The notes below the pieces were generated by a model that had not been told where the DNA came from, made no database searches, and saw nothing but the letters and a program-made list of their open reading frames with translations. From the sequence record NC_006883.2: DNA of 64,000 nucleotides. The stretch is one strand, 5' to 3'. Made by a program: the position numbers and the translations under genes. Numbering within the stretch: position 1 is the first letter of the stretch; each line of letters opens with the position of its first letter. This document shows, piece by piece, positions 18,829 through 38,818 of this stretch.

Positions 18829-18854
18829 ATATTTGTTGAATCGACGGGTTCAAC

Positions 18855-19030
18855 GGGGAGTGACTGAATAAACTTTCTGGCATATAGCTGGTTAAGGTGA
18901 CGAGACACAGGTGGTGCTGCTACTCGCAAGAGTAGAATCGACTTACCAGTCGGGTCTCAGGCAAGGACGTAAAATTTACTACTGTAGTAATGCCCGTTCT
19001 TTGTTGGTAATACAGAAACCCAACCTCCCA
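18855..19030 (+). ncRNA. structured ncRNA, probably the manA RNA motif of cyanophages
   Basis: GC-elevated intergenic region; terminal GGGAG/CTCCC pairing, GAGAC/GTCTC stem, CTACTC-gcaa-GAGTAG GNRA hairpin. Family name is from recall, not a search. Confidence 0.6.
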
Positions 19031-19049
19031 CCCCAATATTTTTTTGATT

Positions 19050-37269: not shown

Positions 37270-38073
37270 ATGACAAGCCTGATTGATCCGAAAAAATATA
37301 CCAAAACACTTGACCTATTAAGGTCATTTTTTTTGTCTAAAGGTTTTTATGAAGTCCATACTCAGAACCGTTTAAGTATCCTTGCTGCATGTGAAGATCC
37401 AGAAACAGTAGCAACCTATAATTATGGTGATAATGTTTGGCCATTACCTCAAACTGGACAGATGTGGTTAGAGTATGAATTACTCAAAAACCCAGAAGCA
37501 GCAGGATTCTTCTGTTTATCTACATCCTATAGAGCAGAACCTAATCCAGTACCAGGTAGGCATGAAACTATCTTCCCTATGTTTGAGTTTGAAATGCACG
37601 GTGGTGTAGAAGAACTTGAAAAGATGGAAGTTGAATTGTGCGAACATCTTGGGATACCCTTAGATCAAGAGAATATCCTTTCTTATGATGATTGGGGTAA
37701 TATGTTTAATGCAAAAGAACTTGAGCATGAACATGAAGAGAAGATTGGTCGTGGTATGATTACTAAGTTCCCTGAGTGGACATCACCATTTTGGAATATG
37801 GCAAGATACGATGATGGTGTAACCAGTAAGAAGATTGATGTTATATTAAATGGTATGGAAACTATTGGTAGTGCAGAACGCAGCACTGATAAGAAACAGA
37901 TGCGTGATACATTCCATACTATTTCTGATGGTGAATATGCTAATTTACTTTACAAATTATTTGGTAAGGAAAGAGTAGAAGCAGAACTTGAAGAGTTTCT
38001 TGACTTTGACTTCTTTCCTAGAAGTGGAGGAGGAATCGGTGTAACACGTATCATGCAAGCAATCCCTGATTAG
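37270..38073 (+). CDS. class II aaRS catalytic-domain protein (AsnRS/AS-AR-like, no anticodon-binding domain)
   Basis: Motif 1 FFLSKGFYEVHT, motif 2 SYRAE..GRHETIFPMFEFE, motif 3 SGGGIGVTR; only 267 aa. Confidence 0.85.
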   Translation: MTSLIDPKKYTKTLDLLRSFFLSKGFYEVHTQNRLSILAACEDPETVATYNYGDNVWPLPQTGQMWLEYELLKNPEAAGFFCLSTSYRAEPNPVPGRHETIFPMFEFEMHGGVEELEKMEVELCEHLGIPLDQENILSYDDWGNMFNAKELEHEHEEKIGRGMITKFPEWTSPFWNMARYDDGVTSKKIDVILNGMETIGSAERSTDKKQMRDTFHTISDGEYANLLYKLFGKERVEAELEEFLDFDFFPRSGGGIGVTRIMQAIPD

Positions 38074-38082
38074 GGATTCCTT

Positions 38083-38168
38083 TGTGAGGTGACGAAATTG
38101 GTAAACGTGTCAGTCTGTTTAACTGATGTTCCTGGCGGGACTTGAAGGTTCGACTCCTTCCCTCACAG
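38083..38168 (+). tRNA. tRNA-Asn(GTT) with long variable arm
   Basis: Acceptor TGTGAGG/CCTCACA plus G73; D loop TGG; anticodon stem TCAGT/ACTGA with loop CTGTTTA; 17 nt variable region; T arm GAAGG-TTCGACT-CCTTC; no encoded CCA. Confidence 0.85.
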
Positions 38169-38203
38169 TTTAGATTACTATATAGTTCAGTTGCGTTTAG
38201 CAA

Positions 38204-38818
38204 ATGACTTGTACAGGAACACTCCCAAAAGAGGTAGTTCTCGAAGCACTTCGGTGTTGTAGGGACGTCTACCCACATGAGCAAGATTATTTGGTTAGTA
38301 GGAAAGTTGCAGGACATACTATTCTTGCAGTAGAAGGTACGAATGAAACTACTGATTGGATTACTAATCTTAAGTTCTTAATTAAGAGGGATGATTGTCA
38401 TAGGGGATTTAAAAATAATGCTAATAGAACATTAGCACAATTAGTAGTTGCCTATGAAGGATTAAATCCAGAAAGAAAACTTGTTATTGCAGGTCATTCA
38501 CTTGGTGGTGCTACTGCCACATTAATAGCAGATCTCCTTTGGGAATCTGGTAATACAAATATTGCACTTATTACTGCTGGTTCTCCGAGACCAGGAGGAA
38601 GAAGATTGAAAAGGAGGATTAAGGATCTTGAACACTACAGGTTTGTACACGGTAATGATATTGTTCCAACGACTCCTCCATGGCTTGCTGGATACGTTCA
38701 TACTCATCCAGTTACTAAACTTGAGGATGCAAACGACACAAGATTTGATGGGGTCGCAGATCATAACATGGGCGACTACTATGACGCAGCAGTAAAACAC
38801 TACGAAAATCACGAGTAA
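38204..38818 (+). CDS. lipase class 3 (alpha/beta hydrolase)
   Basis: VEGT..DW, GFK, GHSLGG nucleophile elbow, DIVP, DH. Confidence 0.88.
   Translation: MTCTGTLPKEVVLEALRCCRDVYPHEQDYLVSRKVAGHTILAVEGTNETTDWITNLKFLIKRDDCHRGFKNNANRTLAQLVVAYEGLNPERKLVIAGHSLGGATATLIADLLWESGNTNIALITAGSPRPGGRRLKRRIKDLEHYRFVHGNDIVPTTPPWLAGYVHTHPVTKLEDANDTRFDGVADHNMGDYYDAAVKHYENHE

Follow-up and report, generated by a model that had tools for sequence, protein, structure and literature searches.

A long-armed tRNA with asparagine identity elements and an adjoining core-only AsnRS-like ligase in Prochlorococcus phage P-SSM2: a candidate natural orthogonal pair

In the PylRS-tRNAPyl system the gene of the synthetase adjoins the gene of an unusual tRNA, recognition is independent of the anticodon and the pair is orthogonal to the host set. 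The allo-tRNAs are made up of a type II body with the anticodon of another amino acid; they and the Candida tRNA-Ser(CAG) keep serine identity, and their charging by the host seryl-tRNA synthetase (SerRS) leads to reassignment. The Candida tRNA-Ser(CAG) is itself a type II body with another amino acid's anticodon and an unusual base at position 33 (PMC2246281). There are also documented phage tRNAs in which an altered anticodon stem-loop allows escape from tRNA-targeting defences (PMC11555353). In the current analysis we describe a tRNA gene (38083-38168) and the ligase gene preceding it (37270-38073), both encoded on the plus strand of a 64,000-nucleotide stretch of sequence record NC_006883.2. 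This whole stretch is referred to as the window, and its source is Prochlorococcus phage P-SSM2 (100% identity over the tested 1.9 kb).

The tRNA has asparagine identity elements on a long-armed body of leucine type, and the ligase has the fold of a class IIb aminoacyl-tRNA-synthetase catalytic core with a predicted pocket of the asparaginyl-tRNA synthetase (AsnRS) pattern. Of more than 200 marine phage loci examined, about 95% have the two genes together. The reading that we favour, with a confidence somewhat short of an even chance, is that a mini-AsnRS blind to the anticodon charges its own structurally marked tRNA and supplies Asn-tRNA(GUU).

A single tRNA is called by ARAGORN in the window, at 38082-38169 (+), as Asn with anticodon gtt. 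The Rfam tRNA family (RF00005) matches at 38083-38168 with 52.5 bits (gathering score 29). It is the sole tRNA of the 252-kb P-SSM2 genome (PMC3037559) and its gene is already labelled tRNA-Asn in GenBank (GU071092), while no discussion of the type II architecture of this tRNA-Asn was found in the literature. The tRNA is comprised of the following parts.

38083..38168, + strand: type II tRNA with anticodon GUU, 86 nt, CCA not templated (ARAGORN; Rfam, 52.5 bits; covariation in 46 homologues; own covariance model, 108 bits)
38083..38089, + strand: 5' strand of the acceptor stem, U1...G7, paired with 38161-38167, U1-A72 invariant (homologue alignment, covariation)
38092..38108, + strand: Leu-type D arm with a 3-bp stem ACG/CGT and an 11-nt loop, AAATTGGTAAA (sequence, covariation, matches to annotated phage tRNA-Leu)
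38110..38126, + strand: anticodon arm TCAGT-CTGTTTA-ACTGA, with anticodon GTT at 38117-38119 and U37 at 38120 (sequence, covariation)
38127..38143, + strand: variable arm of 17 nt, stem GTTCC/GGGAC and loop TGGC (sequence, covariation, minimum-free-energy (MFE) fold)
38144..38160, + strand: T arm GAAGG-TTCGACT-CCTTC (Rfam, covariation)
38161..38168, + strand: 3' strand of the acceptor stem, CCTCACA, and discriminator G73 at 38168 (sequence, family comparison)

The features on which the initial annotation of this tRNA had been built hold good. The GTT anticodon, U1-A72, G73 and U37 are each read directly from the sequence, and the 17-nt variable region with its GTTCC/GGGAC stem and TGGC loop is also present in the MFE fold, which is a five-arm type II cloverleaf. 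The D region (GACGAAATTGGTAAACGT, 38091-38108), with its 3-bp stem and 11-nt loop, was considered to be Leu-like and matches the D arm of annotated phage tRNA-Leu genes. The variable stem is flanked by one unpaired base on its 5' side and two on its 3' side, which matches the aligned phage tRNA-Leu genes. The acceptor stem TGTGAGG/CCTCACA gives the U1-A72 pair, and a T-rich trailer directly follows G73 with no CCA. The cloverleaf arms, G18G19 and a TTCGA-type T loop place the molecule among the tRNAs, as judged by Rfam, ARAGORN and covariation in every stem.

Homologues have been collected with the upstream ligase protein as bait, and 80 IMG/VR loci provided 46 distinct cyanophage tRNA sequences for alignment. 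In the specified cloverleaf 99.9% of the stem cells form standard pairs, and changes on both sides are seen in 18 of the 24 pairs. Pairing falls to 41-48% once the partners are slid, and none of 500 shuffles reaches the observed score. These values and controls indicate a structure far beyond chance. The variable stem is among the covarying stems; its lack of conservation was named in the initial annotation as a sign that would have told against a functional chimera. The copy in P-SSM7 is 85% identical and has compensatory differences in the D, anticodon, T and variable stems, with the acceptor stem, G73 and the loop CUGUUUA being identical in the two phages.

A wider comparison involves 59 distinct ligase-linked tRNAs from three clades. 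U1, G73 and G34-U35-U36 are conserved in all 59 and A72 in 58. The anticodon together with G73 constitutes the AsnRS identity set. The U1-A72 pair is a determinant of the amidotransferase GatCAB (PMC1635274, PMC2330236). The rest of the anticodon loop is loose: position 33 is U in 39, C in 14 and A in 6 sequences, position 37 is U in 46, G in 8 and A in 5, and positions 32 and 38 are variable. A four-base anticodon GUUU has been considered and is ruled out, as the loop is of 7 nt and not 8 and position 37 is other than U in 13 of the 59. The variable region spans 5-39 nt, with at least 13 nt in 49 sequences and merely 5-7 nt in the other 10. CCA is templated in 41 of the 59 and in none from the cyanophage clade; this templating tracks the host lineage, which speaks for maturation in the manner of a normal tRNA in each type of host.

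The body can be traced to a tRNA of another amino acid. In blastn comparisons positions 6-33 of a relative share 96-100% identity with tRNA-Leu genes annotated in many cyanophages, and its positions 7-73 share 80% with a tRNA-Leu of an Aeromonas phage. Some relatives have the very same anticodon-stem 5' strand as cyanophage tRNA-Leu(UAA) genes, and alignment to phage tRNA-Leu reveals a shared D arm and variable-arm layout. The differences from tRNA-Leu are clustered at the acceptor end (G1-C72/A73 to U1-A72/G73) and in the anticodon loop. The only match to E. coli tRNAs by blastn, a weak one to the T arm of tRNA-Tyr, is uninformative on ancestry. On these sequence comparisons the body is derived from a phage tRNA-Leu that has been rebuilt with the Asn identity set. 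The proposal of a chimera, with Asn identity elements on a type II body, is thus borne out by invariants in 58-59 of the 59 sequences and by the Leu-type body.

The gene immediately upstream, a 'tRNA ligase' in GenBank, encodes the second component.

37270..38073, + strand: class IIb aminoacyl-tRNA-synthetase catalytic core, 267 aa (Pfam, AlphaFold2, Foldseek, PDB profile search)

Its open reading frame (ORF) ends 9 nt upstream of the tRNA. The Pfam family tRNA-synt_2 (PF00152) of the Asp/Lys/Asn group spans the whole protein (7e-13), and no other domain is present. The AlphaFold2 model, based on an alignment of 38 diverse relatives, has a pLDDT of 95.8, and its best Foldseek matches are AsnRS 1x54 (1e-17) and the catalytic domains of aspartyl-tRNA synthetase (AspRS). 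A profile search against PDB sequences gives AsnRS 2xgt first (1e-13) and then AspRS (1e-10); core-only paralogues are weaker, with EpmA at about 1e-5 and the archaeal asparagine synthetase 3p8t/1nnh at 1e-5 and 2e-4. The N-terminal OB-fold anticodon-binding domain is absent, and the ligase aligns only to residues ~140-430 of the AsnRS/AspRS chains. This core-only size (~260-300 aa) is found in all 668 family clusters of a 1.8-billion-protein library.

The class II residues of the ligase include R88 and E90 of motif 2 and R260 of motif 3, and the pocket is formed by L67, E106 and R204. In the alignment to AsnRS 2xgt and human AspRS, Leu67 is situated where AspRS has the carboxylate-binding Lys (QSPQLYK vs QTGQMWL), Glu106 where AspRS has Asp, and Arg204 is present. 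AsnRS is characterised by Glu, Arg and Leu in the pocket and AspRS by Lys and Arg (PMC7387524), and by this rule the predicted pocket is of the AsnRS pattern. L67 and E106 are conserved in at least 90% of the diverse ligase alignment. The ligase apparently is catalytically active and of the Asn type, as far as these residues indicate. It scores far under the NCBIfam equivalog cut-offs for asnS (17.6 bits, cut-off 342.6) and non-discriminating AspRS (ND-AspRS; 25.3, cut-off 353), as well as for EpmA/PoxA (17.8 bits vs 264 and 11.3 vs 286.9), and the predicted protein is thus outside both the architecture and the curated family scores of AsnRS.

The alignment with the P-SSM7 orthologue starts at residue 1 and shows 82% identity. 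The annotated coding sequence in P-SSM2 (741 nt) starts 63 nt downstream of the start of the 804-nt ORF, leaving out 37270-37332; given the conservation with P-SSM7, the longer start (MTSLIDP...) is probably the correct one. Ligase insertions, such as a basic 24-aa insert after PFWNM, have no consistent link with the length of the variable arm. A homologue of 34% identity has been noticed in a bacterial contig (L084 2501-3349), between lpxB and the genes of ribosomal proteins L28 and L33 and with no tRNA. Its catalytic residues are altered (SYRHD, AEH, SGAIG) and several metagenomic relatives are similarly degenerate. It may be a cellular paralogue with another function.

The linkage of the two genes is seen in each clade. 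In the first scan of 80 IMG/VR loci the tRNA follows the ligase in all 76 loci with room for it, the other 4 contigs stopping at the ligase stop codon. In a second clade (~55-60% protein identity) a GUU tRNA is situated downstream of the ligase in about 70 of 77 loci with room; very long arms caused several of these to be missed by ARAGORN, and they were recovered by the covariance model. In a third clade the tRNA adjoins the ligase in 69 of 74 loci and is 4.3 kb off in one more. The locus search with the diverse alignment had no long enough conserved stretch, and single proteins of the three clades were used instead. When searched from the tRNA side with a sequence pattern, the ligase is directly upstream in 95 of 105 viral matches with room.

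The pair is encoded between genes of purine and nucleotide metabolism in P-SSM2, with a lipase gene next, and between gp23 and gp3 in P-SSM7, where it comes after three other tRNAs. These unrelated contexts indicate that the pair moves as a unit. Flanking ORF families are each limited to 11% or fewer of 236 loci, and none resembles an aminoacyl-tRNA transferase; ligase and tRNA are therefore the whole module. A further tRNA of P-SSM7 (L002 4903-4975) is a 73-nt class I tRNA with UAA, A73 and a 5-nt variable loop annotated as tRNA-Leu, and a short-arm 'Leu' tRNA thus coexists in that phage with a long-arm 'Asn' tRNA.

No promoter-like or terminator-like site was found between the ligase and tRNA genes, and they are probably co-transcribed. 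The junction contains one further element.

38061..38078, + strand: 7-bp hairpin AATCCCT/AGGGATT with loop GATT, enclosing the ligase stop codon TAG at 38071-38073 (junction comparison)

This hairpin ends 4 nt before the tRNA, and P-SSM7 has a counterpart, AGCCCT/AGGGCT, at the same place. Hairpins of 6-7 bp with covarying stems are present in 36 of 37 distinct junctions of the cyanophage clade and end 3-5 nt before the tRNA. Their mean MFE is -9.6 kcal/mol as compared to -2.4 in control windows, 3% of which reach -7.8. The hairpin may serve as a stabiliser of the 3' end of the ligase mRNA after RNase P cleavage, or as a regulatory element.

Among 50,697 cultured or deposited phage genomes the family tRNA is found only in P-SSM2, P-SSM5 and P-SSM7. 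The ligase is encoded in these three and in two huge uncultured phages of 484-735 kb (LR756501 and LR756508; L169 3001-3825 and L170 3001-3795), whose ligases are 46-50% identical. Metagenomes contain more than 8000 ligase protein clusters at 90% identity. When one genome from each of 185,579 species was scanned with a tRNA pattern, 48 stretches matched, and Prochlorococcus and Synechococcus contributed none of them; few are true family members, and these resemble phage contigs in metagenome-assembled genomes (MAGs). Long-arm tRNA-Asn is thus not common in the host lineage, and an observation which by the initial annotation would have spoken against an unusual chimera was not made. The ligase was recorded earlier in only P-SSM2 and P-SSM7 of 16 cyanophages (PMC3037559). 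No published description of the ligase-tRNA pair was found apart from a 'tRNA ligase' table entry for these two phages (PMC3037559).

Other tRNAs with Leu-type bodies have also been noticed. One 411-kb contig of Streptomyces sp. CA-251387 encodes two Leu-bodied type II tRNAs (L182 5941-6034, L219 3042-3134) with G1-C72, A73, templated CCA and the loop UGUUUUG, which ARAGORN calls tRNA-Lys (ttt); they may represent Leu-identity tRNAs for a Lys codon. MAGs of Solirubrobacteraceae (L175 3361-3446, L192 6640-6725) contain a Leu-identity type II tRNA with G1-C72, A73, GUU and A37, which is a chimera of the opposite type from the phage tRNA. Four viral contigs (L235, L282, L322, L317) have Leu-type tRNA 5' halves, GGTGGCGGAATTGGTAGACGC, followed by 40-60 nt extra before a normal T arm and acceptor strand. 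They are not called by ARAGORN and may be interrupted or very long-arm tRNAs.

From the structure and conservation of the tRNA, its leucine ancestry, the fold and pocket residues of the ligase and the linkage of the genes we infer that the ligase attaches asparagine to the tRNA and that ribosomes use the product. The two genes would be transcribed together, and RNase P would free the tRNA and leave a ligase mRNA ending in the conserved hairpin. In cyanobacterial hosts the CCA would be added by the host enzyme. As the enzyme cannot see the anticodon, it would pick the tRNA by the acceptor end (U1-A72, G73), probably aided by the unusual Leu-type core. In the class IIb enzyme family it is the motif-2 loop that contacts U1-A72/G73. 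Host tRNA-Gln and tRNA-Asn share U1-A72/G73, so that acceptor-only recognition would be dangerous and a distinctive body makes sense; the combination of U1-A72/G73 with a Leu-type core occurs in no host tRNA, which would make the phage tRNA a private substrate and spare those two host tRNAs from simple mischarging.

The most likely product, Asn-tRNA(GUU), would read AAU and AAC codons, and codon reading is the simplest explanation of a fixed GUU beside an anticodon-blind enzyme. Decoding of Asn by the phage would then be independent of the host AsnRS and of the host two-step route of Asp-tRNA amidation, and the loose positions 33 and 37 may keep host anticodon-loop enzymes (modification, nucleases) off the tRNA. 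Asn accounts for 5.9% of the codons in the large ORFs of the window, with AAT and AAC in a ratio of 4.5 to 1. Among the suggestions of the initial annotation a dedicated enzyme substrate comes closest, given the adjoining and co-inherited AsnRS-like gene, which that annotation did not mention. The accompanying clause, that the RNA is such a substrate rather than a decoding tRNA, is not established, as a GUU absolutely conserved beside an enzyme unable to read it points to codon reading or to recognition by an enzyme of the host.

A number of observations weigh against charging by the mini-AsnRS followed by ribosomal use. U37 (46 of 59) and a base other than U at position 33 (20 of 59) are very unusual for ribosomal decoders. 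U37 excludes t6A37, which is normally needed by ANN-reading tRNAs, and poor decoding would weaken the last step of the mechanism. In view of this atypical loop a sizeable probability is kept for a non-ribosomal role and for a host class IIb enzyme that recognises GUU. The invariant set of GUU, G73 and U1-A72 is also what a host AsnRS, ND-AspRS and GatCAB need. On the side of the enzyme, AsnRS and ND-AspRS are not separated by general similarity, and the Asn call is made on the three pocket residues. In class II motif 1 another residue stands in the place of the otherwise invariant proline (EVHTQ), and the quaternary structure of the ligase may accordingly differ from that expected. Charging with Asn and use on the ribosome are, at this stage, proposals drawn from sequence.

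The linkage also has exceptions that count on the same side. About 5% of the ligase loci have no nearby tRNA (L125, L127, L129, L138, L139, L166, L339, L340, L349, L361), and the family tRNA was not found within 3 kb of the ligase in the two huge phages. Three phage-like arrays pair a class I tRNA-Asn with a long-arm GUU/U37 member (L260 638-713 and 2161-2256; L311 3077-3153 and 4049-4143; L217 3185-3260 and 6553-6651). These long-arm members are of 95-99 nt and have no ligase in the stored flank.

An unlikely but serious alternative is that the ligase charges the tRNA for a purpose off the ribosome, the aminoacyl-tRNA serving as donor or scaffold for a transfer or an amino-acid transformation. 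The near-universal U33 and purine-37 of decoding tRNAs are not conserved across the 59 sequences, as would suit such a carrier, and the phages that hold a family tRNA beside an ordinary class I tRNA-Asn suggest non-redundancy. The elbow and T loop are nevertheless canonical, no transferase or other conserved third gene is associated with the 236 loci, and the absolute GUU is hard to explain in a carrier whose enzyme has no anticodon-binding domain.

It is likewise doubtful that the host AsnRS, or ND-AspRS followed by GatCAB, charges the tRNA while the core acts as an asparagine synthetase (archaeal AsnRS paralogue or AsnA-like) or as a modulator of AsnRS/AspRS, the pair boosting both the supply and the decoding of Asn. 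The family invariants coincide exactly with anticodon, discriminator and U1-A72, the PDB matches include core-only class IIb paralogues that charge no tRNA (3p8t, 1nnh, EpmA), and some ligase loci are without a tRNA, all of which are consistent with this possibility. However, the profile of the ligase is nearer to AsnRS/AspRS (1e-13, 1e-10) than to the archaeal asparagine synthetase (1e-5). The near-obligate adjacency and the remodelled body would also be unexpected for a mere extra host-type tRNA-Asn. In class II complexes the long variable arm faces the synthetase side, and it may hinder full-length class IIb enzymes.

We consider it improbable that the tRNA is only a nuclease- or modification-proof spare tRNA-Asn which survives tRNA-targeting defence, with a ligase that exists solely because the host AsnRS rejects it. 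Positions 32, 33, 37 and 38 vary freely around a fixed GUU, as such a spare might be expected to show. Queuosine insertion requires U33-G34-U35, and a base other than U at position 33 would block it. The defence-evading phage tRNAs mentioned above provide a precedent (PMC11555353), and the resistance to anticodon nucleases suggested in the initial annotation would be compatible with the odd positions 33 and 37. Against this, no tRNA-Asn-specific defence is known in these hosts, no search for one having been made, and the explanation overlaps with private charging by the mini-AsnRS rather than replacing it.

Mischarging by the host SerRS or leucyl-tRNA synthetase (LeuRS), which would insert Ser or Leu at Asn codons, had also been raised in the initial annotation and is very improbable. 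The long variable arm and G73 do resemble the identity elements of bacterial SerRS. But LeuRS needs A73 and the family has an unvarying G73, the D arm and the arm geometry are of Leu type and not of Ser type on comparison with a tRNA-Ser, and the 10 of 59 relatives with a variable loop of 5-7 nt cannot be Ser acceptors. A proteome-wide change of Asn to Ser or Leu would be without obvious benefit, and an Asn-type ligase is encoded alongside. A decaying pseudo-tRNA without function, which U37 and the untemplated CCA taken alone could suggest, is hardly credible and is ruled out by covariation in all five stems, beside which stand the thousands of ligase clusters in marine metagenomes with the tRNA retained and the CCA templating that tracks the host lineage.

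Two other features of the window are recorded here. A class 3 lipase / alpha-beta hydrolase gene is situated directly downstream of the tRNA (38204-38818, +), and it is unlinked to the cassette in P-SSM7 and other loci. At 18837-19034 (+) there is a full-length match to the manA RNA (Rfam RF01745, 181.6 bits), a motif of cis-regulatory function that marine cyanophages are known to have.

If charging of the tRNA by the mini-AsnRS is correct, the pair would represent a rare natural synthetase reduced to the catalytic core which still has a dedicated tRNA, and a documented change of tRNA identity in which a foreign, type II body received a new acceptor end and a new anticodon. It would bear on the evolution of tRNA identity, on the minimal size of a working synthetase (the acceptor-stem 'operational code') and on the reasons why phages carry parts of the translation apparatus. 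As the sole tRNA kept by P-SSM2, in a module very common in ocean viromes, it probably matters when Prochlorococcus and other marine bacteria are infected. Genetic-code engineering could also make use of a pair that is compact and independent of the anticodon.

In comparison with the known classes of tRNA, the phage molecule has the GUU, G73 and U1-A72 of bacterial tRNA-Asn, elements used there by AsnRS or ND-AspRS and by GatCAB (PMC1635274). It differs from the class I body of tRNA-Asn, with its variable loop of 4-5 nt and 4-bp D stem, in a variable arm of 17 nt here and up to 39 nt in relatives and in a 3-bp Leu-type D stem with an 11-nt loop. In place of A37 it has U37, which precludes t6A, and U33, although present here, is not fixed in the family (C or A in 20 of 59). 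With phage and bacterial tRNA-Leu it shares the D arm, the core layout, the long variable arm and its geometry with the Leu-type unpaired flanks, whereas G1-C72/A73 is changed to U1-A72/G73 and the Leu anticodon to GUU (G73 and GUU in 59 of 59), with the main LeuRS determinant A73 gone. It has the G73 of tRNA-Ser, but the D arm is of Leu type and 10 of the 59 have short variable loops. By its predicted structure it is therefore outside the structural definition of tRNA-Asn and outside the identity definition of tRNA-Leu. The defence-evading phage tRNAs resemble it in an anticodon stem-loop unlike that of the host isoacceptor, and they differ in being class-matched and host-charged, with no synthetase of their own and no swapped body (PMC11555353).

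In its architecture the ligase is structurally closest to core-only paralogues for which tRNA is no substrate. The archaeal asparagine synthetase (AsnRS2/AS-AR), AsnA and EpmA/PoxA are, like the ligase, cores of the Asp/Asn/Lys family of 260-330 aa without the OB-fold; they charge no tRNA and are unlinked to any tRNA gene, and the phage profile is nearer to true AsnRS/AspRS than to them. In comparison with the allo-tRNAs and the Candida tRNA, the phage tRNA has its acceptor end also switched to match the anticodon, and a putative dedicated enzyme is encoded in the adjoining gene. In function the closest analogy is with PylRS-tRNAPyl, with which the phage pair shares adjacency and, by prediction, anticodon independence and orthogonality. 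PylRS is of the unrelated class IIc and inserts a non-standard amino acid at a stop codon, whereas the phage enzyme has a pocket like that for plain Asn and its tRNA corresponds to sense codons. The phage genes may tentatively be regarded, at rather less than an even chance, as a natural orthogonal pair, a minimal anticodon-blind class IIb synthetase with a private tRNA rebuilt from tRNA-Leu, which, in the furthest version of this view and given its loose anticodon loop, would be no ordinary decoder but a defence-proof decoder of Asn codons or an aminoacyl carrier for another reaction.

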